A stretch of DNA of 64,000 nucleotides from NCBI GenBank assembly GCA_950097015.1, contig CATNEN010000001.1:18228001-18292000 (forward strand), in the 5' to 3' direction. Source of the stretch: Macrostomum hystrix (Eukaryota; Animalia; Platyhelminthes). The position numbers and the translations under genes were made by a program. Position 1 is the stretch's first letter. Each line of letters begins with the position of its first letter. Positions 1,506 to 24,561 of the stretch are shown in pieces. A model generated the notes under the pieces. That model saw nothing but the letters and a program-made list of their open reading frames with translations. It had not been told where the DNA came from and made no database searches.

Positions 1506-1885
1506 GACCCCTTCATGCATGTTCTCACTCTCGCATACGCGTTACTCATCTTTACACATGTGTTAATCGTCCGAGTTGTCTGTTCGTCAAATTAAAAGTT
1601 AGAAGGGCTGGTTGCTTGAGTTAGCTTGACTCACCCTTGCATACGTTAAGCATGAAGTTGATCTTCCCATTTAGCTGATGCTTCATCGTGCATGCTCAAG
1701 AGCTTCGTAGATTGAATTCATGCTCATCTACACAATCAACAATTGCTACCTGAATAGTCATCAATAATTAGCTTGGCTGACTTTCTGTCATGATCTCAGA
1801 TCACAGATGTCTGGATGGTACCATTATGCAACCATTTAAATTCAAATCTGCTTTCAAGTGCGACTCAGTGATTTGGTGGCAAACT

Positions 1886-3385
1886 GGAAGAAAATGAGGG
1901 GAAAAGGAAGAAAATGAGGGGAAAAAGAGGAAGAAAATGAGGGGAGAAAGAGGAAGAAAATGAGGGGAAAAAGAGGAAGAAAATGAGGGGAGAAAGAGGA
2001 AGAAAATGAGGGGAAAAGAGGAAGAAAATGAGGGGAGAAAGAGGAAGAAAATGAGGGGAAAAGAGGAAGAAAATGAAGGGAAAAGAGGAAGAAAATGAGG
2101 GGAAAAGAGGAAGAAAATGAAGGGAAAAGAGGAATAAAATGAGGGGAGAAAGAGGAAGAAAATGAGGGGAGAAAGAGGAAGAAAATAAAGGGAGAAAGAA
2201 AATGAGGGGAGAAAAAGGAAGAAAATGAAGGGAAAAGAGGAAGAAAATGAAGGGAGAAAGAGGAAGAAAATGAGGGGAGAAAGAGGAAGAAAATGAGGGG
2301 AGAAAGAGGAAGAAAATGAAGGGAGAAAGAGGAAGAAAATGAAGGGAGAAAGAGGAAGAAAATGAGGGGAAAAGAGGAAGAAAATGAGGGGAGAAAGAGG
2401 AAGAAAATGAAGGGAAAAGAGGAAGAAAATGAAGGGAGAAAGAGGAAGAAAATGAGGGGAAAAGAGGAAGAAAATGAGGGGAAAAGAGGAAGAAAATGAG
2501 GGGAAAAGAGGAAGAAAATGAAGGGAAAAGAGGAAGAAAATGAGGGGAGAAAGAGGAAGAAAATGAGGGGAGAAAGAGGAAGAAAATGAGGGGAAAAGAG
2601 GAATGAAATGAAGTGAAAAGAGGAAGAAAATGAGGGGAGAAAGAGGAAGAAAATGAGGGGAGAAAGAGGAAGAAAATGAGGGGAGAAAGAGGAAGAAAAT
2701 GAGGGGAGAAAGAGGAAGAAAATGAGGGGAAAAGAGGAATGAAATGAAGTGAAAAGAGGAAGAAAATGAGGGGAGAAAGAGGAAGAAAATGAGGGGAGAA
2801 AGAGTAAGAAAATGAGGGGAGAAAGAGGAAGAAAATGAGGGGAGAAAGAGGAAGAAAATGAGGGGAGAAAGAGGAATGAAATGAAGTGAAAAGAGGAAGA
2901 AAATGAGGGGAGAAAGAGGAAGAAAATGAGGGGAGAAAGAGGAAGAAAATGAGGGGAGAAAGAGGAAGAAAATGAGGGGAGAAAGAGGAAGAAAATGAGG
3001 GGAGAAAGAGGAAGAAAATGAGGGGAGAAAGAGGAAGAAAATGAGGGGAGAAAGAGGAAGAAAATGAGGGGAGAAAGAGGAAGAAAATGAGGGGAGAAAG
3101 AGGAAGAAAATGAGGGGAGAAAGAGGAAGAAAATGAGGGGAGAAAGAGGAAGAAAATGAGGGGAGAAAGAGGAAGAAAATGAGGGGAGAAAGAGGAAGAA
3201 AATGAGGGGAGAAAGAGGAAGAAAATGAGGGGAGAAAGAGAAAGAAAATGAGGGGAGAAAGAGGAAGAAAATGAGGGGAGAAAAAGGAAGAAAATGAGGG
3301 GAGAAAGAGGAAGAAAATGAGGGGAGAAAGAGGAAGAAAATGAGGGGAGAAAAAGGAAGAAAATGAGGGGAGAAAGAGGAAGAGA
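1886..3385. repeat. 22-23-bp polypurine minisatellite (GAGGAAGAAAATGAGGGGAGAAA)n
   Basis: More than 60 tandem copies. Confidence 0.95.
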
Positions 3386-5339: not shown

Positions 5340-7300
5340 CGAGAACCGTAGCGAGAACAGTAAGTGGAATCGTAGCTAGAACTAAAAGCAGCTAGAACTG
5401 TTAAAGGAATCGTAGCTAGAGCAGTAAGTAAAATCGTAGCTAGAACTGTGAATGGAATCGTAGCTAGAACTGTGAATGGAATCGTAGCTAGAACTGTGAA
5501 TGGAATCGTAGCTAGAACTGTGAATAGAATCGTAGCTAGAACTGTGAATGGAATCGTAGCTAGAACTGTTAAAGGAATCGTAGCTAGAACTGTGAAAGGA
5601 ACCGTAGCTAGAACAGTAAGTAGAATCGTAGGATTCGTAGCTAGAACTGTGAATAGAATCGAAGCTAGAACTGCGAAAGGAATCGCAGCTAGAACTGTGA
5701 GTGGAATCGTAGCTGGAACTGTAAATGGAATCGTAGCTATAACAGTGAATGGAATCGTAGCTAGAACTGTAAGTGAAATCGCAGCTAGAACAGTGAAAGG
5801 AATCGAAGCTAGAACTGTGAATGGAATCGAAGCTAGAACTGTGAAAGGAATCGAAGCTAGAACGGCGAAAGGATTCGCAGCTAGAACTGTGAGTGGAATC
5901 GTAGCTGGGACTGTGAATGGAATCGTAGCCAGAACAGTAAGAGAAATCGTAGCTAGAACTGTGAATGGAATCGTAGCTAAAACTGTAAGTGAAATCGCAG
6001 CTAGAACAGTGAAAGGAATCGAAGCTAGAACTGTGAATGGAATCGAAGCTAGAACTGTGAAAGGAATCGAAGCTAGAACGGCGAAAGGATTCGCAGCTAG
6101 AACTGTGAGTGGAATCGTAGCTGGGACTGTGAATGGAATCGTAGCTAGAACAGTAAGAGAAATCGTAGCTAGAACTGTGAATGGAATCGCAGCTAGAACT
6201 GTGAAAGGAATCGAAGCTAGAACTGTGAATGGAATCGTAGCTAGAACTGTAAGTGAAATCGCAGCTAGAACAGTGAAAGGAATCGAAGCTAGAACTGTGA
6301 ATGGAATCGAAGCTAGAACTGTGAAAGGAATCGAAGCTAGAACGGCGAAAGGATTCGCAGCTAGAACTGTGAGTGGAATCGTAGCTGGGACTGTGAATGG
6401 AATCGTAGCTAGAACAGTAAGAGAAATCGTAGCTAGAACTGTGAATGGAATCGCAGCTAGAACTGTGAAAGGAATCGAAGCTAGAACTGCGAAAGGAATC
6501 GCAGCTAGAACTGTGAGTGGAATCGTAGCTGGGACTGTGAATGGAATCGTAGCTAGAACAGTAAGTGAAATCGTAGCTAGAACTGTGAATGGAATCGTAG
6601 CTAGAACTGTTAAAGGAATCGTAGCTAGAACTGTAAGTGGAATCGCAGCTAGAACTGTGAATGGAATCGAAGCTAGAACTGTAAGTGGAATCGCAGCTAG
6701 AACTGTGAAAGGAAACGAAGCTAGGACTGTGAATGGAATCGCAGCTAGAACTGTGAGTGGAATCGTAGCTAGAACAGTAATTGGATCGTAGCTAGAACTG
6801 TGAATAGAATCGTAGCTAGAACTGTGAATGGAATCGTAGCTAGAACTGTGAATGGAATCCTAGCTAGAACTGTGAATGAAATCGCAGCTAGAACAGTGAA
6901 TGGAATCGAAGCTAGAACTGTGAATGGAATCGAAGCTAGAACTGTGAATGGAATCGCAGCTAGAACAGTAAAAGGAATCGAAGCTAGAACTGTGAGTGGA
7001 ATCGTAGCTGGAACTGTGAATGGAATCGTAGATAGAACTGTGAATGGAATCGAAGCTAGAACTGTGAATGGAATCGTAGCTAGAACAGTAAGTGGAATCG
7101 TAGCTAGAACTGTAAAAGGAATCGAAGCTAGAACTGTGAGTGGAATCGTAGCTGGAACTGTGAATGGAATCGTAGATAGAACAGTAAGTGGAATCGTAGC
7201 TAGAACTGCGAAAGGAATCGCAGCTAGAACTGTAAAAGGAATCGCAGCTAGAACTGTAAAAGGAATCGCAGCTAGAACTGTGAATTGAATCGCAGCTAGT
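5340..7300. repeat. 24-bp minisatellite (GCTAGAACTGTGAATGGAATCGTA)n with higher-order blocks
   Basis: ~80 copies; generates the ARTVNGIV pseudo-ORFs 5448..6791 and 6800..7288. Confidence 0.95.
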
Positions 7301-8179
7301 AGAACTACTTAATTTTCTAGCTAGTGAGTTCTGTTTTGCATGATAAACAAATGTTATTTAGAATAAAAAACTGGAAGCTCTTGATCATATTGATATTGTT
7401 AATTTTTCGCGTTTTATCGGCCATTTGTTTGAAAGTTGAAAATCTACTCTATGATTTACTTTTTCTCTCTAATAAGCAGCCCGGCCCACCTGTTTTTCCC
7501 ATTCTCCATCAATGATTTATGCTCATATTATAAAAACTGTTGTTGTTTATCTTTAAGACGACAAAAAGCAGGCTTCAAATGTGACCCAGTCTCACCCACC
7601 CCGCCGTTTGAGTTTGTTTGATGGCTCTAGCAAGTTAATTGTACAACTTCTAGCATTCACAGATAGTAATAAATATCGATAACTAGCAATTAGAGTTGCG
7701 ACTGAATGGAGAATGGAGTCAGCACAAAATGTAGTCTTTGCTCGATTCGAAGCTGTGGGCGGCAGAGTCTAGTCACCCAGGTGGCGGCAAAGTTTTTTTG
7801 ATGTATAGCTATAGTTTGACAGCCCGCAATCCCACTGTTAAATGACAATCGTTGGGTCTCAGCAATGAACTGGCTAAAACTCTAACTTTGAGGCCCGGGG
7901 CAATGTGACCCGAGTGTAGCTAAGTTGCCGCTAACATATGCGGGTCACATGCCAGGCTGTCACGAACACGTTTTCAATCGACTCCAGTGGCTATTTAGTT
8001 AGACAGGTGGGATGAATGGGGAACTAAAAAATGGACGCTTAAATTAATTTCACACAAAAACAACCAGACAAAATTCCGCTGGAAATAAGCTACTTCTAGT
8101 AGATCATATTGAACACCAACAAAATCGAGAAGCATACACTCGTAGGTTAAAAAATTTACGTAGATAATACAAAATAGCC

Positions 8180-9750
8180 AATAGATGCTTCAGCTAAGGT
8201 GCAGTCATCTTCAGTAGATCCTTCATCTAAGGTGCAGTTATCTTCAGTAGATCCTTCAGCTAAGGTGCAGTTATCTTCAGTAGATCCTTCAGCTAAGGTG
8301 GAGTCATCTTCAGTAGATCCTTCAGCTAAGGTGGAGTCATCTTCAGTAGATCCTTCATCTAAGGTGCAGTCATCTTCAGTAGATCCTTCATCTAAGGTGC
8401 AGTTATCTTCAGTAGATCCTTCAGCTAAGGTGCAGTCATCTTCAGTAGATCCTTCAGCTAAGGTGCAGTTATCTTCAGTAGATCATTCAGCTAAGGTGCA
8501 GTTATCTTCAGTAGATCCTTCAGCTAAGGTGCAGTCATCTTCAGTAGATCCTTCAGCTAAGGTGGAGTCATCTTCAGTAGATCCTTCAGCTAAGGTGCAG
8601 TTATCTTCAGTAGATCCTTCAGCTAAGGTGGAGTCATCTTCAGTAGATCCTTCAGCTAAGGTGCAGTCATCTTCAGTAGATCCTTCAGCTAAGGTGCAGT
8701 TATCTTCAGTAGATCCTTCAGCTAAGGTGCAGTTATCTTCAGTAGATCCTTCAGCTAAGGTGCAGTTATCTTCAGTAGATCCTTCAGCTAAGGTGCAGTC
8801 ATCTTCAGTAGATCCTTCAGCTAAGGTGCAGTTATCTTCAGTAGATCCTTCAGCTAAGGTGCAGTTATCTTCAGTAGATCCTTCAGCTAAGGTGCAGTTA
8901 TCTTCAGTAGATCCTTCAGCTAAGGTGGAGTCATCTTCAGTAGATCCTTCAGCTAAGGTGGAGTCATCTTCAGTAGATCCTTCAGCTAAGGTGGAGTCAT
9001 CTTCAGTAGATCCTTCAGCTAAGGTGCAGTTATCTTCAGTAGATCCTTCAGCTAAGGTGGAGTCATCTTCAGTAGATCCTTCAGCTAAGGTGCAGTTATC
9101 TTCAGTAGATCCTTCAGCTAAGGTGCAGTCATCTTCAGTAGATCCTTCAGCTAAGGTGGAGTCATCTTCAGTAGATCCTTCATCTAAGGTGCAGTTATCT
9201 TCAGTAGATCCTTCAGCTAAGGTGGAGTCATCTTCAGTAGATCCTTCAGCTAAGGTGCAGTTATCTTCAGTAGATCCTTCAGCTAAGGTGCAGTCATCTT
9301 CAGTAGATCCTTCAGCTAAGGTGGAGTCATCTTCAGTAGATCCTTCAGCTAAGGTGCAGTTATCTTCAGTAGATCCTTCAGCTAAGGTGGAGTCATCTTC
9401 AGTAGATCCTTCAGCTAAGGTGCAGTCATCTTCAGTAGATCCTTCAGCTAAGGTGGAGTCATCTTCAGTAGATCCTTCAGCTAAGGTGCAGTTATCTTCA
9501 GTAGATCCTTCAGCTAAGGTGCAGTTATCTTCAGTAGATCCTTCAGCTAAGGTGGAGTCATCTTCAGTAGATCCTTCAGCTAAGGTGCAGTTATCTTCAG
9601 TAGATCCTTCAGCTAAGGTGGAGTCATCTTCAGTAGATCCTTCAGCTAAGGTGCAGTTATCTTCATTAGATCCTTCAGCTAAGGTGCAGTTATCTTCAGT
9701 AGATCCTTCAGCTAAGGTGCAGTTCTCTCTTGTAGATCATTCAGCTATTG
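8180..9750. repeat. 33-bp minisatellite (GATCCTTCAGCTAAGGTGCAGTTATCTTCAGTA)n
   Basis: ~47 copies; generates the SSVDPSAKVQL pseudo-ORF 8199..9758. Confidence 0.95.
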
Positions 9751-9754
9751 TGAA

Positions 9755-9990
9755 GTGAGTAGGGAATTCAGTGAGTAGGGAGTCTAGTAAGCAGGGAGTC
9801 TAGTGAGCAGGGAGTTTTGTGAGTAGGGAGTCTAGTGAGCAGGGAGTTTTGTGAGCAGGGAGTTTAGTGAGTAGGGAGTCTAGTGAGTAGGGAGTCTAGT
9901 GAGCAGGGAGTCTAGTGAGCAGGGAGTCTAGTGAGCAGGGAGTTTAGTGAGTAGGGAGTTCTGTAAAAAAAGATTTTAGTGAGTAGGGAG
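9755..9990. repeat. ~17-bp tandem repeat (GTGAGCAGGGAGTCTA)n
   Basis: Degenerate tandem copies. Confidence 0.85.
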
Positions 9991-10388
9991 TTTGGCAAGT
10001 TAAGGGTTGGGGTAAGGGGTTTGAAGGAAAACGAAAAAATGGTACAACTAATATCGATTGAATTTTAAATTAAGCGAGTCAGTTGGTAACTTTCGATTTC
10101 TAAGTTTCTACTAAGAACTCGAATTTTCAAATCGTGGATCATGAACAAGGCGAATCTCAGCTGGCTGTTGGGAGATCTCGGTGGATACGCCGAGTCAATC
10201 GACCGTCAGCACGTCGCATTGGTGGCGCTAATAGGCGCTCTCATTGTGATCAATGTCGTTGTCGTGGTGTTTCTGCAGCTGCTGCGGATGTCGGTGCCAG
10301 CGTCAGAGTAATCGTTCTCCCGTGCATCGGTCGAGTCGTTCGGCTGATGAAATCGTTGCTGGATTGCCATGCTGAGTAGTGGCGTGAG

Positions 10389-10560
10389 TAGAAATGCTAA
10401 TACCGGGATCCCGGTTTCGAAAAATACCGGTTTTGGCCCCTTTTTTCTGTATTACCAATACCAGTATTAGGGTCCGGAATTGGTCCGGTATTGGTCTAAA
10501 ATTATGTCTCAAATTTTTACAAATTTGAGATTTGTTGTTTAAAATGCATTTTCCTAGAAA
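10389..10560 (+). mobile_element. Probable hAT-family terminus, truncated at the CACTA left end
   Basis: TAGAAATGCTAATACCGGGATCCCGG start with repeated ATACCGG/CCGGTATT subterminal motifs, resembling hAT ends; no partner end found. Confidence 0.4.
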
Positions 10561-11401
10561 CCCGGTGTAAAAAGCATCGTCGAAAAGACGTCTTTTCGAC
10601 GCCTACGGTCCGATCAAACCCTATGATAGCTCAGCTAAAAAAACCGAGTTAGCTGCTGAAAACGTCTTAAGAGGTCTTGATATCAGTTATAAATGCATTT
10701 AAAAGATGAAAAAATATGTACTTCGTACAGTCCGATTTTAGTCCGAAAATGGCCGACGCGTCGACCGGCTCCAAAATGGTCCGATTTGAGTCCGAAAAAG
10801 GCCGACGAGAAGGACGATGTTCCAAACAAAATTACTCGTGAGTTAGCTGCTAAAAACGTCTTAAAAGGCCTTGATTTCAGTTCTAAATGCATTTAAAAGA
10901 TGAAAAAATGTGTAATTCGTACAGTCCGAAATTAGTCCGCAAAAGGCCGACGCGTCCGCGGTCCGTTTTGAGTCCTCAATAGGGCGACGAGGACGATGTT
11001 CCATAAAAAAATTCTTGAGTTAGCTGCTGAAAACGTCATAAAAGGCTTTATTTTCCGTTACTTATGCATTTAAAAGATGAAAAATTGTGTAATTCCAACA
11101 GTCCGATTCCAGTCCGCAAAAGGTCTTTTTTTATCTACTGTACAGAGCCTAACATGCTTGAAATACTACTCGTATTTAAACGTTAGTAGTGCAGCAAGTT
11201 AAATGTTCGGTTTGTATAATCGTAATATTTAGTTTTTAGATATAAATTATTTACTATACGGCTCGTACATATACTTACTGTTTTACTGATCAGTGAGAGC
11301 TAGGAAGTAAAATTTGTGTGCATCAGTGAAACAAGTTACGAGTATATAGTGGAATCATCAAAATATTCTGAGCGTGTATACAATTCGATCTTCTGGTCGG
11401 C

Positions 11402-12557
11402 TGTGATATTTTGACTTAGGTCTCTCTTAACGTTGAGATTCCTAAATGAGGTCGGGTGTCCTACTCTTTGTGAGAGATTCTCTTTTCGCAACTCGAAAAT
11501 AACGAAGACAAGACGATTCAAATTCCAAGCTAAACAGCTGATATTTAAGTGTTAATTAGTAAATAAGAGGAAGCTATGATCACTGATCAATTCCCCTGGC
11601 AGCGCTCTTTTCGTCCCCTGCCAGGTACTGTACTTAATTCAATCCAATTCACAATTCGCACTAACAAAATCTCGATAACCGCAACACAAAACACGAACTC
11701 TACTCGATAATACGACACGATAAATAACACAAATAAATCCTAGACAAACAGATAGTCCCTATAACAAACAAGACAAATAACGCGAAACCTAACCAAAATC
11801 CCTAACATAAAACCGAGGCGACCAGCAAGCACTTCTGCACTATGGCACAACGATAGTTCTATCGTGCCACACCTAATGTCTGTTCGACGGCGTCCCACCG
11901 ATGATTGTCGGCGATATGGAGAGTGCTTCCGTGCTTGCCAATCCCTATCTAACACTCCGTCAGCAGTTGGCCAGACGTACCGAGCTCAGCGCAAGCTACT
12001 TACTGACGTGGGGTTGAGTGTGGGGGTTTTCTTTGACTAACTAGTTGGACCGGTTTACCTGTCCCGGTATCTATTTACTAGGATGCGTAACACGAATGAG
12101 AACAATATCAAGATCAAGAGCAAGAGCAAGGTCAAACGCGAGACCAGAATCACATGAGAACAATATTTCAGCGCAATAGTCAGTTTTATAGTCAAGCGCC
12201 CGCCCCAGCCCTCATCAAAGCCTGGGTGCCGGCCGCGCCGCTTGTTCTTCTGCCAGGTCGACCCTGCCGGTTAACGAACCGGCTGCTGATTGGCCCGGCT
12301 CGGGGTGTCGCACTTAAGTCGGTTCACTTCAATCGGCTAGCCGTCCTCCCATTGGTTGGGCCCACCAGACCAGGGCTAGTCTGATGCCTTGGCTGTAGAG
12401 CAGGGGTGACCGGCCGGTCGCGTGTTAGGCCTGGCTGGGGTGCGCATGTACAAACAACTAACCTATAAGATACATTAAATAATTCATAATATTGACGTGC
12501 GCGAATAAGTTACTACAAGTAGAAATATACGCATTATAAAAACATGCCGACACTACA
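11402..12557 (-). mobile_element. Solo LTR (1156 bp) nested in the CACTA element
   Basis: TGT...ACA termini; 4-bp TSD CGGC (11398-11401 and 12558-12561); minus-strand CCAAT (~12290, ~12350) and TATAAAA (~12190). Confidence 0.6.
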
Positions 12558-13859
12558 CGGCCATGCATATTCCGGCCGTCTGCAGTAAACCGCTCAATAG
12601 CCGCATTGATACTGCGGCAACTGCTTTAATTGCATTACATCTCGAATAGCTATGTATTTAGGAGTATATAGAATAGGTAGAAATCGCATAATTGTGATGG
12701 TCCGTTTTCCGTCCGATTTGAGTCCGTAAAAAGGCGACGTGAATGTAAAATTTAACAAACACATGTATTTTGACCGCAGGCAATAAAAAGTTTTGTCGCA
12801 GAAGAAGCCAGTTGCACTAAACTTAATAAGAAGTCAGAATCAATTTTTTAGTTTCAAATTGCAGCTTAAAAACGAAAGAATGGCCTGAGCAAAGTTTTTG
12901 AAAGCGCTGCAAACTTTCACTTTGACCTGACCGGATCCTCAATTAATTAGCTATTATGTACGTGAGAATTCTCGATTCGATCAACGAATTCTCAAAAACT
13001 ATTCACAGTAAGACACTAAAATTCATTAGACAAGACAAAGTGAATATAAACACCGATATCAAACTCGCCATCACTTTGTGGTTTATCTATAAAAGTTAAT
13101 TATTAAGTGAAAGTCTATTTGATCAGCAATGTCAGTGTAGCTTAGTTAGGATATATTATGAAGCTACAGGAATATTTTTTACAAAAAAGAGTGTTATTTT
13201 AAAGCGCATAGTGTATATTTACACTATTTACACTGGCCCATACTTTTATTTAGCAAAAAATACATATTTTTGCAACTATAATGAATTGTACCATGTGAGG
13301 CTTAAATGCCTATATACTATATAGCTAGGTTACAATTCCTATTTTCTGCTCTAGATACTTCAAGTCTAACTTCTGTTTATTCTTGGGCTTTCACAAGTGC
13401 CTATTTTATTGAAACAGTGAAAGAAAGAAACTGTTATATAGCTATGATATGAGAACAAATTGTCATGAAAAATGTATTATTACTTATTAGCTGGTTTAGG
13501 TATGTGGCATGCAGTTTTGGTCATGCTTAGGCATTAAGAAGCAAAGATCTGTCAGTTAACAGTGAGCTATAGTCAATCATGCCTTACATAATCTTGGATG
13601 GCAGCAGCATTCAGGCTAGCTCTTGTTGGCCAAGCACCAGATACAGTAGAAGTTCCAGTAAGCTCTCGTACATGCAGATTGAGAATCTTGCCATTCCTTA
13701 ACCTGTTTGAAAAGGATAAGGTGGTTAAGAGAGTTGTTGGTTAGCTTGTTGGTTTTAAATGTATTAAACAGAGCAGAAAAATAAATAACATAGCACATAT
13801 ATTATGTATAGGCTAAGTAATTAATATAATTTATTATACCTATCCGGCCAATTGTGCAG

Positions 13860-14003
13860 TATGGTCAAGAGCATAGCCACAGCTATTGTGCAGCATACGC
13901 TCGAATCTAAAGGCTGCACATGGCTGTTCAGTCCATGGACTGAGGGATGCCAGACCCACCTTAAGTTCAAATAGCTAATATTGGTACCCATTTTACAACT
14001 AGC
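13860..14003 (-). mobile_element. SINE family A, partial copy
   Basis: Matches the body GGCTGTTCAGTCCATGGACTG...GGTACC of copies at 14970-15155 and 22150-22340. Confidence 0.55.
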
Positions 14004-14016
14004 TCGGATACACAGA

Positions 14017-14412
14017 GGGGCGGATAGCTTGGTCAGTAAGGTGTCGGACTATGGATCAGATGGTCCTGGGTTAAACTCCCGACCTAGTCTAGAACTATGC
14101 GTGCAGCCTTTGGCAAGCTGCTTTGCCCTGATGTGCACACAGTCTACTCAGCTGCAAATGAGTACCGATATTTCGTCGGGTAATAATAATTCTGGCTGGC
14201 GTGGAATAAAGCAGTTCTGTGCGGCAATTCAGTGGGTTTGGATGCTGCCGATATGTTTGGAAAGAATAAATTCCATTGCTGACACGCGGCTGTCAACCGG
14301 TGTCCGAGAGGGCCGGGGAGTACATTAGGTGTGCAGTCCCCACCTGCTAGTGTGCTTGACACACAACACCTGCACTGGCCCTTGTGTCTAGTGTCATTAT
14401 TATTATTATTTT
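14017..14412 (+). mobile_element. tRNA-derived SINE family B, full length
   Basis: tRNA-like head (A-box GATAGCTTGGTCAG, B-box-like GGTTAAACTCC), (TTA)n tail, and a second similar copy at 36400-36667. Confidence 0.75.
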
Positions 14413-14419
14413 ACAGCTG

Positions 14420-14690
14420 GGTTGTAGCCCAGCAGTTAGAGCGTCAGACTCGCATCTTGAAGGTTGATGGTTCGATTCCTGACTCCTGTTTCTTTAAGAA
14501 ACAATTTGAAATTTGTGTCTCTAAGAAAGGCAATTAACTCTGAATTGCTTCAGTTCAGCTAGCTATTATATGGGTACCAGTATTAGCTGTGGTAACTTAT
14601 AGTGGGTGTAGCCTACCCCCAGTCGATGGACTGTACTGGCTGTAGTCCATAGCCGTACGCAGTCTTCAGATACGCCGCACAATAGTGACA
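14420..14690 (+). mobile_element. tRNA-derived SINE family A
   Basis: Head with TAGCCCAGCAGTTAG and GGTTCGATTCC boxes; body is the reverse complement of the copies at 14970-15155 and 22150-22340. Confidence 0.7.
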
Positions 14691-14969
14691 GTTGTAATTA
14701 GTTAATGGATTATTATTAATTTTATAACAGGGTGAACTGAAGCAAGCAAGTTAGGCCTCTTGCCAAAGGGCATAAGTTGTACCAGTAGAGTTAGGAATCA
14801 AACCCCCACCCTAATTCCCCCTGCCTCATCTATCCTATGTCTAATCCCTGCCCTTTCTCAGATTCCTACATTTAATACAGCCGTCGTCTTTTAGGTTCTG
14901 TAAGTGGCCCACTGGCTCATTGCCGACCCCTAGCTGCTAAATATACACTGGGGTCACTGGCTAGATTTG

Positions 14970-15155
14970 CAGCCGACAGCACAGCGGAGCTATTGCGCGG
15001 CTCATCTGAAGACTGCGTACAGCTGTACAGTCCATGGACTGGGGGGACACCACACCCACCTTTAATTATCCCAGCGAATGCTGGTACCATTTAACAGCTG
15101 GGTGAACTAAAGCAATGCAGAGTTAATTAAGTGTCTTGTTAAAGGACACAAATTG
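14970..15155 (-). mobile_element. SINE family A, 5'-truncated copy
   Basis: Closely similar to 22150-22340. Confidence 0.65.
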
Positions 15156-17533
15156 TCTCACATGAATGCAGCAGACCAAATAACCCTAGCTAGAACCAAC
15201 AGCTGGCAATAGCTAGTGAATGCTATAATTTTTATGACACTTTAGGGTCTGACATACAGAGATAGTATGTATGTTTAGTAAGCTTTTAAGTTAAAAAATA
15301 CATGCATAGTACCTTTTTAGACAAACTGAACCTGTACACATGTATTATTTAAACCAATGGCTCAATCAGTAGCTATCAATTTTGGGTTAGGTGTTAAGTA
15401 TTTCACAAAAAGATCATGATTAGTCAAGCACTTACTATGTGACCAGCAGTTCTCAGATGCACTGATGTAAGGAAAGCATTTGCTATAGGTAGTACTGCCT
15501 TAAGCCAGTCAAAAATGCCACCATTCCAGCTAGTGTGATAAGGACCTGTTTAAGAATGATGAATATTTTGAAAAACTTGTTATTATTAGCCATTTAAATT
15601 AGTCTGATAAAAAATGTTCGAGCTACAATTGAAAATTTAGTAACTCACCAGTCAGCTGAATTTATTTAATAGAAAAAACTCTTGCCGAACCTATAGTCCT
15701 TGTTTAATTTTCGTCTGTCATTCAATTTCTTTTATTTGTTCAATTCCTTCGAGATTCTTTTGATTGCTTCTCATTTGATTCCTCTGAGATTTCAGTGCCG
15801 AGTGCTCTTAAAAATCGATAATCTTACAAAGATCTGATCATACGAAGATACGAATTTAATTAAAACCAATTAATTTCAGGTCACTTAATATCAGGTCAAT
15901 TAATATCACTAATCTATAGTGATATCTGAACGTTTGAAACATCGAGTTCAGTGTAGACAGATTTGCATTGTTCAGTTTCACCCTGGTCTCTTAGTCCGCG
16001 GACTAGTGATATAATGAAGAAAAATAAAACGCAGCAGCCGCAGCAGCAGCAGCCGCAGCAGCATCAGCAGCAGCAGCACCAGTAGCAGCAGCAGCAGGGC
16101 CCTGGCTCACCGTGGCTTCTTGAGCCACACACGGTAGGCCAGGGCAGCCGAGTAGTGGTGTGGAAGGTGAAGGTAGGTGCCGGGGCATCTACCAACTTCA
16201 CCCCGCTCCGGCACCTACCTTCGGGCGGTGATAAATAAAAGGTTTGTTAAACCACGTACTTTTTGCTATTTTATACTAATGGTTCTTCGCAATTATTGAC
16301 AGTTTTTTTAAATAATTCTTAAAATATACTTTTAAACGTCCTAAAAAACTATACCCGGTTTTGCAGGTTTTACTTTCCTTAAAAAGTTCACATTGGTGCT
16401 AGGTGATAAAACTAAATATCTTTCTAGCCATTAGCTACACGTCATTGTTTAACATGCTGAAATTCACACCACAAATGCTAACACAAAATTACAATAAAGC
16501 AAAATGCATGCACTCACATTTAATGACAGTAGCTAAATGCTATAACGTTAGTCTTTTTGTCGTACGTGCCGCACTTCGTGTTTAACCATGCAGCTCATTC
16601 CATAAGCCAACCCCAAGCATTTGCTTAGAGTTGGATGCATGCCCTTGTTGCCTTTGGATAAAGCATTTATTAAAGGTGCATGTTTTTACTAAATAATGAT
16701 ATTTGCGCCTTAAAACTCATTTTCGCCTTTCAGAGCACTACACAAACTAATATTCAGAACGTACAGATCGATCTGCAGCGCAGCGCCATAGGATTCTTGG
16801 ATATCTATGCCTTCGTGTCTTTATTTATTTCACACTTATTTATTTATTACATGCACTGCATGCATTAAGAATTTATAAAATGCTTTAGCTTTGCACGACA
16901 ACAAACATATTTATTGAGCTATTGCACCTTGCTTTGTGTTTCTGCACTTAATATGCATGCATGCAATTAGCTTCTTAGAATCACTTTATATAATAATAGC
17001 TGGCTATATCGCATCTGTCCCTTAAAGGCTTGCTGAAATGTAGCTGAAGTTCATAGTTGACCAGGGATCAAATTTCAACCGAAAGCAAAAACTGTATACT
17101 GTCAAATTCCAATTTTAGTTTTCCCCGTTCCAGAAAATCCTGAGACGTGTGTTGCAAGGTGGTCGGCAGAAAATGTACCGACGATCGACATCGCTCTTAG
17201 CTTTTACCTCGGATGTACAGGTATGCAGTTACTAAAGGACTGCTTTTATAGGAAACAGTCGGTCTCAATTACATGTCTTCAAAATCAAGGCTTAATTACA
17301 GATGATAAGTCATGCATGGACAATATGAGAAAACACAAGAAAACAGAACAAAACATGACCGTGCCGTAAGAAACAATAATTTAGATGAGTGAAGTAGCGC
17401 AACTGACAATCAGACAATACGTGATGTAATTCGGAGTCATTGTCTGGATCATGTGATTTCTAGGGCAATGTAGGGATTTCTGAGGTATTAATTAAATTAT
17501 GGGATTTCTGATTTGGGTGTCATTTTGTCTCAG

Positions 17534-18316
17534 TCATTTTTCTAAAAAAAGTTTTACTTTCTCGTGGTCGAAGTGAAATTTGTAAAAGTGCTTGTCTCTT
17601 GGGTGGGTCTTGGTGATAAGCTTGTCCTCGTAGTAATGCCTCAGCGCTCGCTTCATCGTTTCAAAGCTCATGTCCCGCCGCTTGTGACTGCTCCAGGCCT
17701 CTGCTAGGCCGGTTGGGTTTAGAATTTGGAAAATGCCCTCCAGCTTGTTCTCCCAGCGCAAGCAGGGTGGCGACAGGTCAGCGACAGACGGAGTTTCGAG
17801 TAACTGGTACAGAAACTCCCACAGCCAAAAATTCCTGTCTGAGGTTGGGCAATGCTAAGTTTTGATAGCTAATTGTTGTTAAATACTAAAGATTCTCAAA
17901 TCCCAAATTTTCGCAGCTCAAAAACACTAACCGATGCCAGCACGCTTCTTCCTTGTTATTTTTATGACGCCTGGTGGCTGCACATGCGTTGGGAGATGCG
18001 AAGTGGGCGGATCAAGCGAATGAACCCAGCAAAGGGAGCAATCAATCGCCGAAGCATTCAGTCGCTGCTGCGGATGCTGTTGCTGTCCGATGGACCAGAT
18101 GGACTCCGATGCACTCATGGCCCCAGTGTCATCTTCGTTGGCAACCGGCTTGTACAAATCGAAGAGGGCAGCGCTTTCGTAAGATTGGAGGTCACTGAAT
18201 TCGCAGCGCATCACGGCGAAGTCCAAATTGTCTAGACTGCCCAGGTCATCGACGGGCTGGTAAGAATAAATGGGTTTGCGATTAGCTTGTCTCCCGTGAA
18301 CAATCAATCTAGACAC
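17534..18316 (-). CDS. ETS-domain transcription factor, ELF/E74-like. Exons (<=18316..17932) and 17838..17534; 93-bp GT-AG intron; true start uncertain
   Basis: Spliced product reads ...RKKRAGIDRNFWLWEFLYQLLE...LRWENKLEGIFQILNPTGLAEAWSSHKRRDMSFETMKRALRHYYEDKLITK...FYKF. It has the three ETS tryptophans and the RxxR recognition helix. Donor G|GTTAGT and acceptor CTCAG|AC join in frame. Confidence 0.9.
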
Positions 18317-18434
18317 TGTGTCCCATAGCTAGACAATCTAGCCACTCTCCGCAATCAAGTGTTGCTATAGTAACTGTCTTTCTAGCTATAAGCTAGCTAC
18401 CTAGAAAATCTACGAGATTTTAATTTACTCCTAG

Positions 18435-19174
18435 TGTTGTGCCGTGGTGTAATTTCACTGCTTAGCGATCTCAGGCTTGCAGTTGATTGGCGCACTGGGC
18501 ACTGTACTTTCCCTCCTCGGCTGTTTATGCTCCACTCACCCCAGTCTGTCGGGGCTCGCTGGCTTGGCTAGCTGCCCCACCCCTGTCAACGCGTCCCCCC
18601 AGCCTGATATCGCCCCACCCTCCCGCTTGCGTGACTACCTTTAAAACCCCAAGTGTTACCATGCTCGCGCAGCTGCTGATTGGTCCGGGCCGCCTCTCTC
18701 GCGCGCCGGCCAATCAGCAGCCTTCTCGCTGTTATCTTCTAAACTGGTTGTGTGGGTGGCCGGGTGGGCCCGGGGTAGCGATACCCGCGGCTTAGTCCGG
18801 CCAGCCTAAAATATATATTGGAGTGGCGCCGGTGAGGGGCTCCTTCGACCGTTTGCTCAACCCTAACCCTCCAACCGAATCTGAGACTAATTAAGATTGT
18901 ACCTTAAGGTAGTACCGACCGAGTCCCCCATCGGCGACCACCGCACAGTTAAAGTTGCAGTCTAAGAAACTGTTAAGTGAGTAACTTTGGTCTTTTTGTC
19001 ACTCATTTGCGGGTCTGGCTGGGACTGAACTGCGCCATAGGGACGGACTGATCAAGTCTCCTGACGCGACCCCACGCTCGGATTCCGAAGTCAGTCCGAC
19101 CAGCGGGCTGACGCCACCCTCGTGCTCGCTCACTGGAAGACAGGATCAGAAGGCGATCCGGCTTTGTCACAACA
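18435..19174 (+). mobile_element. Solo LTR (740 bp)
   Basis: 7-bp inverted termini TGTTGTG...CACAACA; 4-bp TSD CTAG (18431-18434 and 19175-19178); CCAAT boxes and a TATA-like AAATATATA near 18810. Confidence 0.75.
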
Positions 19175-19244
19175 CTAGTAGATACCCACTGTCTCCCATA
19201 GAACTACCAGTCACTGCCTCGAATCATAGATTTACCTTTAGGGA

Positions 19245-19348
19245 ACTGGGGGATCATTGTCAACTGTGGGATCATTGTCAACTGGGGGATCATTGTCAAC
19301 TGGGTGATCATTGTCAACTGGGGGATAATTGTCAACTGGGGGATCATA
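19245..19348. repeat. 18-bp tandem repeat (ACTGGGGGATCATTGTCA)n
   Basis: 5-6 tandem copies. Confidence 0.8.
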
Positions 19349-19667
19349 GTTATGGAATATTTAACAATTATAGAATAGTTAAACACGATTTAATTTGTTT
19401 TTTTTTTCATGCTTCTAAATCGCCCTTCTCTCCATCGCCTCTCTCACATTTCACTTGCTTGCTGACATCTCGTTTGCATCTCATCTCACTTAATCGGCCT
19501 CTACTTTTTACTCCCTCTTAATCCTCTCCTCTCTCATTAAGTTACTCAAAGAAAAACGATTACAGAAAAGGAAACTTTGCCCCTAAATCAGCTTTATACA
19601 ACCACACCATCCAATCGCACTCAATTGATTGACAAACCTCTAATCGACATACTGCTAGGGCGATTCG

Positions 19668-20272
19668 TTAAGATTGATCCACGCGTGAGTTGCCTTCGCC
19701 CTCTTCCTCGCTGTCGGAGAAGGATAATTCGACGTTGACCTCAGGGACAGCGCGTTTGTTAGTCTGAAAAATTAAACATTTTTAATATTTTCTCATTCAG
19801 AAACATGAGAATGTGCATAACAGAAATTAAGACGCGGGGCCTACATGCAAAGATTATAGTGGGAGATTATAGTTGCAGAGGGGAGAAGGAGAATACTTAG
19901 AAGGACAAGTTATTGAACAGGCAGGTAACATACATTATCATTCACCTGAAGTTCAGCCGTTGATGGAATTGCGCAAGAATGTCGCTTGAATCGGACTATA
20001 AGTCCCGGGCCAGTTTCGCAGGTCACCCTGACCTGATCAGCGCGTTGGGAAGTCTGGCAATGTATGCGTGCAATACGTGAGTGTACAATAGAAATATAAC
20101 AAAAGAATAAAGGAAAAGTTGTAAACTTTTTACAATCTCAAATAACCTGCTGCCTCTGAATTCTCACCTCATTGAGGGCGGTCGATACGCGCTTTAAACG
20201 AATTTTTAAACCGGGCGCTGCTGTGTCTGCACTTCCGCAGTCAGATATTAGCCACTGATCACTCATATCCAT
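19668..20272 (-). CDS. Predicted 3-exon small accessory protein (102 aa; 109 aa with the alternative donor at 20147). Exons 20272..20168, 20053..19946, 19763..19668
   Basis: ATG start; phase-0 canonical junctions GAG|GTGAGA, GCCAG|ACT, CAG|GTGAAT, TTTTCAG|ACT; exon lengths 105/108/96 nt with no internal stop. Product MDMSDQWLISDCGSADTAAPGLKIRLKRVSTALNE-TSQRADQVRVTCETGPGLIVRFKRHSCAIPSTAELQ-TNKRAVPEVNVELSFSDSEEEGEGNSRVDQS. Absent from the ORF track. Confidence 0.65.
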
Positions 20273-21134
20273 GAAATATTAAATACTTTTGTGATGAAAA
20301 TAAATCGCAAAATAATTTCCTGTGTAATGACTCTGAACAGGTTTGGGTGGGACCGATCAAGTGGGGTGGGGAGGGGAGCACACAGACTTGTTATTTCTAG
20401 AAGTTTCTAGAAGTTGTTATTTCTAGAAGTCTCTGGGAGCACAGACCAAATGGATAAGATAAGGCTTTCCTTCTGTCTGTGGTGGGGAGACCAGTCATCA
20501 GTTTATCCGTTTTTATTTGAGCTGCTCCTTCCTCTTTTGGCCGTGCAAGTCCTGTGACTATGCAGAAGAGCTCTACTAGCTAGATGTTTACCGTTTCTAG
20601 CAGTCACTTCAATTAATGGGAACTAAGTGATTCTGGAAGCATGCTTGTTGCTAAACACTAAGCTTCTAAGTCAATGAGTACGCGTACAATAAAAGCAATT
20701 ACGAAGATAATGACACGCTTTCGAATGCCTTATAATATTAAATTCGATTTAAGAATTTCGTAAAAATGTGCGAAAGAACAAAGTTTTGGCATTAAAGTGT
20801 CAACGCGTTCTTCAGGCAACGGACGGCAAGAAAAATGGACTCCTGTTATCGGAGACCACACACCGCCTCAAATAAACCTTATCGCTTATCATTCCCGGTA
20901 TTTTTTTTGCTATTCGGACTTTGCTGCTCAATATCTTAGTCTTGTCTCTGATCCGTACGTTTGAGTTCATACAGTGAGTTTATACTTCTGAGTTACATAC
21001 GAGTTTATGCTTGCAACTCTGGGAGTATACAGTGTTTTACATTTGTACATTTTTATGTCTGTAGTCAAATTGATGCAAAACATTAACAGTCAAAATTACA
21101 TTTGCTGACAAGGGTGGAACAGAATGCGATTCCA

Positions 21135-23577
21135 CTAATCAACACCAGAGAGAGGAATTACCAGCCATGCCTTTCCGGTCTTGCGCGGGAACAGAAAGCA
21201 CTTCCTGTGGGGAGTGCCAGTAACAAAAGATCGTGTTTTACAATAGACTCCGATACCCAGTTTTGAGGACGGATATGGACAGTCATACAAGTCCTTTTGC
21301 AGCGACGGAATATTGCCAGTTACATGGCCACCAAGAACAGAAGTAATCCGAACAACTGAGCCATTCACGATGCAACAGTTGTCGGGCATCTTAACAGAGT
21401 ACTTAATGGGCTGAATTGGGTTGCTGACTAGTAAGTCGCGAAGTGAAAGCATTTGATTTAGCAAGTAAGATGATACAAAGCGCGTTACTCGAAGGCGACC
21501 CTTTAAGTGAGAGAGGTAGTTCTCATATGGAAAGGCCGAAAAGTCGGACACATTTCCACGTTGCCTCGCGTATTGAAACAAGTGCAAAAGAACGTGAGCA
21601 TTGTGAGTCATGAAACTGTTGCCGTACAGTTGAGCTGCGTCATACACAAAAAGTTTCATGGCAGATTCAGCGGCATCAAGAAGTTCAGGCTGTGGGCTAT
21701 CAGAGCAAAGAACATAACAGGCAAAGTGAAATAGAAGAAAATGCCTGTACAACTCTGTTGGCAGAAATTTGCGAAAAAATACGGGCCCACATACAAAGTC
21801 CACGTGCGGAACTCGCTGGCTTTGAAATGTCCGAGTTCTCGGTTGATTCTCCGAGGGCGTCTTTGGAAATTTGTCGGTGTATATAGCGCACGTGATTCGG
21901 CAAAATCAGAAAGAGCGGAAACTTGATCCGGCCTAATTTTGCGCCGCTATCCGTCATCGACCGCAAAGAGGAAGGTGAAAAGACGCCTAGCGACGCCTAG
22001 AAAGAGCAGGTGCATTGGCTCCGGTGGGCAAGCATCACGTAGTTGCAAGCCTGGCAGTGACAGGAGCGGACTTGGTTCATGCCGCTGGTTGGATTCCCTA
22101 TAGTTGTTGGCGATAAAGTCTAGTAATAATAATAATTGATTACACCTGCCCCAATCGACAGCACAGCCGCAGCTAATGCGCGGCGCATCTGAAGGCTGCG
22201 TACGGCTGTTCAGTCCATGGACTGGGGGGACGCCACACCCACCTTCAATTACCCCAGCTAATGCTGGTACCTATTTAACAGCTGGGTGAACTGAAGCACT
22301 GCAGAGTTAAGTGTCTTGCTAAAGGACACAAAATTCGCAAAAGCACACACACATACACACAACCCCATGCACACACACGCACCTATTAAAACGGTAATCC
22401 TCAGCTGTGCGACACTCTCCGACTTCGACAGGGTAGACTATTCGCCGGTCGACCGTCTGGGCTACCACTCTGCAGTAGGGGCAGCCGTGATATGCGTTTT
22501 GGCCCAAAGTTGCGGTGATGAAGGACCGCGCTGGCGTGTCGCAAATGAACGTGATGTTCCTGATGTGGATTAGCACCCCATCAACTTCGACAAAGTCGGT
22601 CATGAAGGACTGCAGCTCCTTGAGGAAGTCGGCCAGGTACTCGGTAAGAGGTGGTTTACCCAACCCAGCATACACAGCAACAGGAAGTGGGCGACAGAAT
22701 CTCGAAAACTTAACGATAATAGGCCATGCCGCGTAATTTGACGAATTGTAAATCGGCATTCCGTCAATGCCAACATCAATGTCCAGTTCCAACCTTGCTC
22801 TGTCATTCTGGGTGGCTTCCGGATTTCCAAGATCCAACATGCCGCCGCGAATCAGGAACGTCAGGTTCGAAGCAATACCGATGTAGGAAAAGTGTCCACT
22901 ACCTATGGTGTACTTTTGTATTTGTACTGCTTCAGCCGAATGTTCTTTGCGCAGACGGTGCACTGTTCTTGCGACCGGCAGGCCTCGGCAGACTAGAGCA
23001 TTGAGCAGGAACTGCATCGCTCGATGTGAGATGTTGTAACGAACGAAGAATATTAGAAGCTCCTCATTCAGGCTCTCCAATGATGGCTTTGCTGTTTGGC
23101 CTGGGTCCCCATCTTCCGCATCTGTTGACAAGTGATCGGCGTAGTCGAACTCATCAGCCTCACTTTCGTCGAAAGCCTCGTTAATAGCTGATAAATGCAT
23201 GGGGTCACAGGCATTGACACCGGCACTGGTAGAATCAGGCCGCGATTCCTCAGGTGGAATGAGGCTTGCGCCATCTGCATGGGAAGATGCAACCTCCTGA
23301 TTGAAAATAATGAGGAAAAAAAGAAGACGATGAAACTGTGCATAAAATTCCAGGCAATCAATCAAACCTAGCACCCTGTCAATCCTGCCTGTCTGCCCCA
23401 CCCTCGTCAAATTTCTTCACAAACTTGCATGAAACTTAAATATAAACTCAATAAAAATTGAAAACTCACTTGGTCCATTTCTACATCACTGTCCGCAAAG
23501 TCAAGTAGGTGCTTTGTGAACCAATTTTGAAAGTTTCGTCGTGGGTTCGTGTCGCCTTTAGTCCGTCTTTTAGACAT
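21135..23577 (-). pseudogene. EnSpm/CACTA transposase, 3 exons (23577..23470, 23296..22383, 22097..21135), with one in-frame TAG near 21948 and one frameshift near 21785
   Basis: Motifs IDGMPIYNSS..AWPI, FICDTPARSF...GCPYC, EPMHLLFLGV, RRPRR...FKASEFR...LYVGP, THNAHVLLHL, FSAFPYENYL; in-frame GT-AG junctions. Confidence 0.88.
22150..22340 (-). mobile_element. SINE family A inside intron 2 of the transposase
   Basis: Homologous to 14500-14690 and 14970-15155; lies wholly within the predicted intron 22098-22382. Confidence 0.7.
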
Positions 23578-24561
23578 TTTGTATACCAGCTTATACATCT
23601 GTATATGCCTACATGGCAGGATATATGACATGTTTTTTACATGTCTACGAACCTGACCTGACGTTGTCTTAATACGTGAATCAGTTATCATATAAATGTG
23701 CAAATGGTTGTATCAGGATATGGCAACTAAAGAAATGTGATTCCGATTCAGACTGTCTATATGTCTGTCCTTTTAAATCTCAACAATTATTCACATACTT
23801 ACTATATAAAATATAAATATACAATATTCAATATACAATAATATACAATAGTTCGATTCCCGACTCCACTGAAACAATTTGTAGTACGTGTTTGTGAGGT
23901 ATAAAAATTATTCGTCTTCCTTTCTATTATTTTCCTACATGCTTTAGAAACGCGCTTAGTTATTTACGTTGAGTATAGTAAGTATAGTACACAATGATAT
24001 TTCTTGCTATGTATTTAAATTTGTAATTTTTTACCACATGTCTATGTTGCCTGTTGTGCGTTGTATTTCTGCAAAGGCATTTTATACTTTGCTTTCTGTA
24101 TTTTTGTATGAATTCTTCAATAATCCTAATTTTATAGCAAGTTCTGTCTTGCTTACTTCTATTTCAAGTTGTTCTTATTTTATAACTTGCAAATGTTTAA
24201 TGAATTGTCTTTTTCTGTTATATTGTATCTGTGAAATAATGAAATGAGTAACGTATTTGCAAATAAAAATTAATAAGAATATACGATGACATTCATTTTT
24301 TAAAGAAGAAAATTAAAATACTTTTGTTCATGTTTAATAAGTTATTTAAAGGAATACGAGAGAATAATTATTACGATTTTTCATTCAGAGCTACACTACT
24401 AATAGTAGTATTCACAACATTGTACAATGGTCCGAAATTGGTCCTCCGTCGGCCGACGGCGGACGTCCGCCGGACTAAATTTCTGCGTACAATAGACCAA
24501 AAGTCAAAGTCCGGCGGACCCAAAAAATCATCGTCCGCCGGACGATGTTTTTTACACCGGG

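Follow-up and report, generated by a model that had tools for sequence, protein, structure and literature searches.

Among plant DNA transposons, En/Spm and VANDAL elements carry accessory genes, namely TnpA and VANC, respectively. The CMC (or CMCT) clade of transposons unites EnSpm/CACTA, Mirage, Chapaev, and Transib (Kojima 2025, PMC12730594). Fungal KDZ (Kyakuja-Dileera-Zisupton), Plavaka, EnSpm and other transposons encode TET/JBP dioxygenases, for which a role in counter-silencing has been proposed (PMC12730594), and the same paper cites Repbase Reports 2014 for SET-domain genes carried by HarbingerS and by MuDR elements of oomycetes. Here we analyze a 64,000-nucleotide stretch of the genome of the flatworm Macrostomum hystrix (assembly GCA_950097015.1, contig CATNEN010000001.1, positions 18,228,001 to 18,292,000 of the forward strand; hereafter, the window), in which positions 10561–24561 are a 14-kb internally deleted copy of a 23–24-kb family of DNA transposons. 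Probably, this is a non-autonomous derivative of a recently active family in which two host-derived genes, one for an ETS transcription factor and the other for a SET-domain protein, have been retained because they are useful to the element. Our literature searches turned up no animal CMC-type element described as combining a SET8-like enzyme with a sequence-specific ETS factor.

The family resembles CMC/CMCT elements in its conserved transposase blocks (DG..., CD(T/A)PAR, C-x2-C, and (D/E)-x-M-H), RAG1/Transib-like fold, weak matches to Transposase_21 and DUF4218, multi-exon transposase, subterminal repeats and short target duplication, which at 2 bp is like that of Mirage or PlavakaA, in contrast to the 3 bp of classical CACTA elements (the CMC/CMCT range is 2–5 bp). 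It departs from them in its CCCGG...CCGGG termini, in Pfam matches that fall below the cut-offs, in the lack of a clear H-x3-4-H motif, in its very large size, and in having two host-type regulator genes aboard. With the fungal TET/JBP transposons, it has in common cut-and-paste transposition, a gene for an epigenetic enzyme and cargo that is shared or transferred between transposase lineages, although here the cargo is a SET8-like protein methyltransferase together with a transcription factor, and the host is an animal. As in HarbingerS and the oomycete MuDR elements, a DNA transposon carries a SET histone-methyltransferase gene; the transposase superfamily is a different one, and the citing description, through which the comparison is made, mentions no ETS partner. 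The parallel with TnpA and VANC consists in a second element-encoded nuclear protein on the transposase strand and in subterminal repeats as candidate binding sites, without any sequence relationship and without enrichment of ETS core motifs in the termini. As for the cargo proteins themselves, the SET protein shares with KMT5A (SET8/PR-Set7) the fold, the G-x-G, NHS and DY motifs, the C-terminal PWL, and the lack of a post-SET region, at 26–28% identity, and the ETS protein shares with ETV6/ELF-type factors the R-x-x-R-H-Y-Y helix of ETV6, at ~45% identity to the latter. Unlike these host proteins, those of the element have no PNT domain and unrelated N-termini, and their genes are multi-copy inside a mobile element.

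A mobile family and its deleted copy in the window

The matching terminal inverted repeats (TIRs) that an earlier note on this DNA had reported proved genuine: the arms at 10561–10581 and 24541–24561, of 21 nt each, differ from one another by one mismatch, and the pattern has 34 matches in the 220-Mb assembly, with up to two mismatches tolerated, versus none for the control, the same pattern read backwards. Homology between copies breaks precisely at the outermost TIR base on both ends, and the termini of all copies read CCCGGTG at the start and CACCGGG at the end. The 420 bp inward of the left end recur at ~18 genomic places with 90–98% identity; the right end has fewer genomic recurrences than the left. 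The flanks are unrelated among all fetched copies (six with both ends and two with the left end), and perfect 2-bp target duplications (AT, TT, TG, and AC) surround four of the six complete ones. The element is a mobile cut-and-paste family and not a segmental duplication.

Pairwise comparison of copies defines a canonical element of 23–24 kb, exemplified by E2 (C1:15899937–15924290), E3 (C1:18578273–18601720), and E4 (C1:18141007–18164115). Along the gene strand, the transposase, with two or more large exons, is followed by a SET gene of four exons, a tandem array of ~190 18-bp units, and a two-exon ETS gene, and in the full-length copies ~5.4 kb with opposite-strand open reading frames (ORFs) extend from the transposase to the right end. 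The window copy, whose features are as follows, is colinear with E2, E3, E4, and E186 apart from defined deletions and insertions.

10561–10581, plus strand: left TIR, CCCGGTGTAAAAAGCATCGTC; alignments of at least 17 copies start at its outermost base
10582–11410, plus strand: left subterminal region; GTCCG repeats in one orientation, many of them paired; 93–98% identity in ~18 copies
11410–12558: private 1.15-kb insertion, perhaps a nested element; absent from E2, E3, E4, E7, E19, and E186
12558–17243: conserved internal DNA, 88–96% identity to sister copies
17534–17838, minus strand: last ETS exon, with the complete ETS domain (PF00178) and the stop codon; no internal stops
17839–17931, minus strand: ETS intron, 93 nt, GT..AG, frame kept
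17932–18283, minus strand: conserved N-terminal ETS exon, beginning RKPIYSYQPVDDL...; no start codon ahead of the conserved part
18435–19175: private 740-bp insertion, no match in any sister copy; interrupts the ETS upstream DNA
19244–19376: array remnant (~6 18-bp units) and junction of the deletion that took SET exon 4 and the bulk of the array
19638–19763, minus strand: SET exon 3, acidic stretch; TGA stop private to the window copy
19946–20032, minus strand: SET exon 2, with LIVRFKR
20168–20272, minus strand: SET exon 1, with ATG start and LKIRLKR
21135–22100, minus strand: last transposase exon, with the catalytic E/D-x-M-H and a DUF4218-like part; 1-bp deletion
22121–22332: 212-bp repeat resembling a miniature inverted-repeat transposable element (MITE) or short interspersed nuclear element (SINE); shared by the transposase introns of the whole family
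22382–23577, minus strand: transposase 5' exons, a leader from MSKRRTKGD and then an exon with DG..., CDTPAR, and C-x2-C
23576–23882: relocated 307-bp segment, inverted within the transposase intron in other copies; adjoins the 5.4-kb deletion junction
23884–24540, plus strand: right subterminal region, 81–96% identity to sister copies
24541–24561, minus strand: right TIR, recognized by arm pairing, homology to right ends, and the genome-wide pattern match

Two large segments are missing from the window copy, the one corresponding to E2 7297–14109 (from ETS to SET intron 3) and the 5.4-kb right-hand segment. The three co-oriented minus-strand coding units stand in the order claimed by the earlier note. 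Its further statement that the transposase alone has lesions is correct with regard to the damage in the transposase and wrong with regard to "alone": the SET gene is cut short, and the DNA upstream of ETS, of which ~170 bp are retained, is interrupted by the 740-bp insertion and picks up again for 70 bp at 19175–19244. The transposase itself has exon 2 frameshifted by the 1-bp deletion, and the 307-bp intron segment is moved and inverted. The window copy would be non-autonomous, that is, mobile only if intact sisters supply the transposase. On sister sequence, the flanks of the 1.15-kb insertion overlap by ~14 bp. No domain-bearing ORF was found in window positions 12558–17243, which contain MITE-like inverted repeats at 14508–15154, and the 212-bp repeat, which pairs with 14508–14636, recurs at a match of ~90% on over 20 contigs. 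No Hes/bHLH gene was found in the window or in any other locus examined.

Copies of the family lie almost all on contig C1, with a few on C5, C14, C38, and C39. Of the 34 TIR matches, 25 are on C1 (27.6 Mb), concentrated at ~14–23 Mb, and the transposon-type ETS and SET copies are all on C1 save those on C5 and C14; the clustering could be due to hops over short distances or to a chromosome region rich in repeats. To the left of the window copy, the flank at 10470–10500 contains GGTCCGG repeats similar to the subterminal motif of the family, and the insertion site of this copy may have been the debris of a related element. In the left kilobase of E2, 13 GTCCG motifs occur in the same orientation (13 per kb versus 0.6 per kb internally), frequently paired 11 bp apart. 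One of the opposite-strand ORFs of the 5.4-kb segment has a ratio of non-synonymous to synonymous divergence (dN/dS) of 0.35–0.47 between subfamilies; a 165-aa ORF in the right part of full-length copies, in which a Tudor-like protein was suspected, had no support from Pfam, PDB, or Atlas.

Transposase and cargo genes

Intact last exons of the transposase (n = 8) encode 371–374 aa at 98–100% identity. Homologues are widespread in animals, namely in Macrostomum lignano (53%), ants, fishes, a holothurian, a snail, and a tunicate. The DG, CDAPAR, and C-x2-C blocks are invariant in 62 homologues and (D/E)-x-M-H is nearly so, and all of these are present in the window family. The C-x2-C block has the form HGCPYC, and no H-x3-4-H was seen, the family consensus being HH.G.SPL and the window family having a single H. 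In profile searches, DUF4218 (PF13960) scores 21–23 bits in the window family, under the cut-off of 27, and the homologue P0005 combines, in the correct order, sub-threshold matches to Transposase_21 (PF02992; 16 bits) and DUF4218 (15.5 bits); several database homologues come with precomputed PF13960, and Atlas neighbors are annotated as Transposase_21 and Plavaka. The transposase profile had no match among PDB sequences. Fold comparison was made on the full-length homologue P0003, which is 33–38% identical to both window-family exons, rather than on the spliced window-family protein; its model (mean predicted local distance difference test score, pLDDT, 87.8) has as top Foldseek matches exclusively RAG1, BbRAGL/ProtoRAG, and HzTransib, with E-values from 1e-9 to 1e-6. 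Together, the conserved blocks, the RAG1/Transib-like fold of this model and the 2-bp duplication place the family in the CMC/Transib-like clade, where it is closer to elements of the Mirage type than to classical CACTA. The CACTA label of the earlier note applies only in the wide sense of this clade and is not supported when taken literally, given the CCCGG...CCGGG ends and a duplication of 2 and not 3 bp.

The second unit had been described as a stand-alone gene for a 102-aa "ET-motif/SIM micro-protein", a chromatin-reader adaptor, and this description is not supported. In intact copies, its three exons are predicted to join a fourth, SET-encoding exon in frame: in E2, the exons comprise 35, 29, and 42 codons, followed by a 274-nt intron and a 181-codon exon. 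The predicted gene of four exons and 287 aa, with GT-AG borders and an open frame throughout, has no lesion in E2, E3, E4, and E186. None of its splice dinucleotides has changed, and the indels between copies are confined to introns, except for a 2-bp frameshift in exon 4 of E7. Because the TGA that ends exon 3 in the window, which is TTA in the other five of the six copies compared, is private to the window copy, so is the length of the 102-aa ORF; a deletion has also taken exon 4 of this copy together with the acceptor. Judged from this comparison of copies, the micro-protein is an artefact that arose by truncation of the SET gene, and it is a dead remnant in the window. The LKIRLKR (exon 1) and LIVRFKR (exon 2) motifs are present in all six copies.

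The exons were analyzed one at a time. Exon 4 matches the SET domain (PF00856) with 48.9 bits (E = 9.8e-13), above the cut-off. As a single sequence, it matches KMT2D and SETD8 about equally, with only the SETD8 alignments extending to the C-terminus, and a profile of exon 4 with 35 relatives, the latter dominating it, scores 249 bits with KMT5A (E = 4e-73) versus 113 bits (1.6e-31) with the next family, KMT2A. No relative of more than 43% identity was found among 1.84 billion representatives, and none of the relatives bears on the model of exons 1–3; the nearest ones have in common a ...FDYG...PWL end. The AlphaFold model of the exon (pLDDT 84) has SET8 for all of its top 10 fold matches (TM-scores 0.72–0.85, root-mean-square deviation ~2 Å), and the cofactor and catalytic motifs G-x-G, NHS, and DY are kept (G57, N121, H122, and Y162), with a C-terminus of ...NPWLRD and no post-SET region. 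These comparisons point to a putative SET8/KMT5A-like lysine methyltransferase, that is, a chromatin writer.

The ETS factor claimed by the earlier note is borne out by a complete ETS domain, an open frame in the window, and an in-frame 93-nt GT-AG intron. In a sister copy, PF00178 scores 74.8 bits (cut-off, 26.9; E = 7e-21), and the best matches among solved ETS structures are ETV6 (62.8 bits), ELF1/2 (54), and FLI1/ERG (53), so that the ELF/E74-like label given in the earlier note can be kept only as a possibility. The recognition helix, RALRHYY, is identical to that of ETV6; the idea that its H alters ETS specificity was dropped, since ETV6 carries the same H. The protein encoded by the N-terminal exon is 100% identical in 10 copies, and as no ATG precedes its conserved part, an upstream exon is expected. 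The tandem arrays upstream of ETS may be coding, for example as an ETS 5' exon. In E2 (L002:2366–5799), the array consists of 3.4 kb of ATGATCCCCCAGTTGACA units with long open frames of acidic hexapeptides, (VDNDPP)n, on the gene strand, and at the ETS locus L046, a different, 24-bp array lies upstream. Each 18-bp unit contains one GGAT in a context poor for ETS. We likewise rejected a role of the ETS protein as a TnpA-like binder of subterminal repeats, where the repeated motif is GTCCG and GGAA/GGAT is not enriched.

Approximately 30 of the 55 ETS-domain matches genome-wide are of the transposon type, all on C1 or C5. The closest other ETS gene, at C39:4927–4929 kb, has the same two-exon layout and single-copy coding parts; with an ETS domain 53% identical to that of the cargo and, at the DNA level, 82% identity over part of the N-terminal exon, it is likely the source or the sister of the cargo gene. 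Directly downstream of one decayed ETS copy, L042 (C1:17524211–17527534), positions 1800–3108 contain Helitron-type helicase-like ORFs.

Sister lineages and exchange of cargo

At seven or more loci with different flanks, TIRs are found together with ETS, the three "micro" exons, and the transposase, always in the same order. The large-transposon family that carries and spreads ETS, as postulated in the earlier note, is supported, with multiple copies in unrelated flanks and with more than half of the ETS-domain matches being of its type: its ETS and "micro-protein" genes are not single-copy genes away from TIRs, and the two TIRs of the window are not those of independent insertions. Furthermore, transposases with just 37–39% identity to that of the window family are followed by SET and/or ETS, in the same order and orientation, at at least eight loci. 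These diverged loci, among them those below, were judged by coordinates, identities, and open-frame lengths, and the DNA itself was seen for the ETS loci L021–L050 with ±1.5 kb.

C1:19402805–19410449: diverged locus with ETS, SET, and transposase
C1:17817367–17826593: further diverged transposase with SET and/or ETS
C1:14185448–14189287: further diverged transposase with SET and/or ETS
C1:3662121–3663778: further diverged transposase with SET and/or ETS
C1:22618995–22622083: further diverged transposase with SET and/or ETS
C1:21285025–21290823: further diverged transposase with SET and/or ETS

In the diverged lineage, SET is 78–82% identical to that of the window family and retains open frames of 189–215 aa in five of eight copies. 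At L041 (C1:3661964–3665278), positions 572–1842 include an intronless ETS frame of 242 aa whose start lies 10 nt ahead of the transposase stop, an arrangement suggestive of coupled expression or of a retro-copied cargo gene. Within the family, 13 ETS copies differ by 12 synonymous versus 18 non-synonymous or stop variant codons, against a neutral expectation of 79% non-synonymous (p = 0.016), and the summed pairwise dN/dS is 0.33; between lineages, dN/dS is 0.3–0.6 for the ETS exon and 0.7–0.8 for the N-terminal exon. The cargo genes are less diverged between lineages than the transposases, which argues for exchange of modules by recombination rather than for long co-descent, and the ETS and SET modules have probably been exchanged between element lineages. 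Recombination is also suggested by two mosaics. Compared with E4 and E7, E2 shows 86% identity in a 1.9-kb block (E2 coordinates 21172–23072) and 95–99% in the remainder, and at C1:17.81–17.83 Mb, a family-type left end with ETS adjoins SET and transposase of lineage B; both would be explained by elements mosaic through recombination.

Elsewhere in the window, at 8199–9758, a 30-bp tandem repeat has a 519-aa open frame of (SSVDPSAKVQ)n. It lies ~800 bp to the left of the transposon and may represent either a minisatellite or a gene of repetitive sequence. An unbroken 1317-aa pol-type ORF on the minus strand (44707–48660), with protease, reverse transcriptase, RNase H, and integrase, is by its domain content a Ty3/Gypsy-like long terminal repeat retrotransposon, within an island of 60–65% G+C. 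At 62039–64000, also on the minus strand, two neighboring ORFs match KDZ transposase, and the gene extends past the window end.

Passengers or tools of the element

The different explanations of this locus can be weighed against this body of comparisons. That no transposon insertion is involved, so that the locus would be a segmentally duplicated host cluster or host DNA between two independent insertions, would be consistent with the location of almost all copies on C1, mostly at 14–23 Mb, with the tandem placement of some of them (for example, left ends at C1:16174019, 16180540, and 16187066, spaced by 6.5 kb), and with the unmatched 2-bp flanks of the window copy; it is nevertheless next to impossible to reconcile with homology that stops at the TIR tips, unrelated fetched flanks, 2-bp duplications in four copies, and an interior that is colinear end to end with full-length copies. 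Hardly more credible is a genuine stand-alone adaptor micro-protein with ET motif and SIM. In its favor, the splice sites of exons 1–3 are canonical, the six copies show little or no difference in these exons, exons 1 and 3 are recognizable in the diverged lineage at 77–82% DNA identity, and the 102-aa product contains the LKIRLKR motif. However, the terminating TGA exists in the window copy alone; in E2, E3, E4, E7, and E186, the frame of exon 3 runs on to a GT donor and joins the SET exon 274 nt downstream; in the diverged lineage, blocks resembling exons 1 and 3 again lie directly upstream of a SET frame; and in the window, the SET exon has been removed by deletion.

A serious rival, even if we consider it the less probable one, is passive hitch-hiking, whereby host ETS and SET genes were picked up in a Pack-MULE/Pack-CACTA-like transduplication, are useless to the element, and have open frames because the copies are young. 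The family copies are indeed very young, with synonymous divergence (dS) of ~0.01 in SET and transposase, the dN/dS of ETS is relaxed (0.3–0.8), and the termini are not enriched in ETS sites. Yet the cargo consists of complete multi-exon genes rather than fragments; SET has open 189-aa frames at 80–82% identity in a second lineage, and ETS has open frames at dS of 0.3–0.7 with dN/dS below 1; gene order and orientation recur beside transposases that are only 37–39% identical; and indels between copies spare the exons. The explanation that we favor is a family that carries ETS and SET genes derived from host genes and has retained them since they would be useful to the element, for example in element-directed transcription or in chromatin marking against silencing. 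From the completeness of the cargo, its retention across lineages and the mild purifying selection we infer that it serves the element; both genes are unlikely to be dead passengers. Several points count against this explanation. The 2-bp flanks of the window copy (AA and CA) do not match, nor do those of one composite copy, and the 5'-CA(CTA)..TG termini of most CMC elements are absent in all copies. Splicing, promoters, and the ETS start codon are predictions, and the GGAA/GGAT core of ETS sites is not enriched in the termini. A dN/dS of 0.3–0.8 is relaxed for a transcription factor, the codon test is only marginally significant, and part of the ratio may reflect decay after insertion; SET and transposase are too alike within the family (dS ~0.01) for a test of selection. 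Moreover, ETS (dS ~0.35) and SET (~81% identical) are far less diverged between lineages than the transposases (37–39% identity), and such low divergence of the cargo is by itself compatible with passive hitch-hiking as well.

A bolder possibility, which we put forward tentatively and think rather unlikely, is that of an animal transposon clade with its own regulatory kit, comprising the ETS factor, the SET8-like enzyme, and BET-ligand-like motifs, that would be needed for expression, targeting, or escape from silencing, would have been swapped between lineages, and would have more than doubled the ETS repertoire of the host. The value of the window copy is mainly corrective, in that it is a dead copy whose "micro-protein" is a truncation product. 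If the cargo of its sisters is functional, the family would offer a tractable case of a mobile element equipped with a transcription factor and a chromatin writer of its own. It would also represent a route for the expansion and rewiring of transcription-factor families in an animal genome, in which most ETS-domain loci are transposon-borne.

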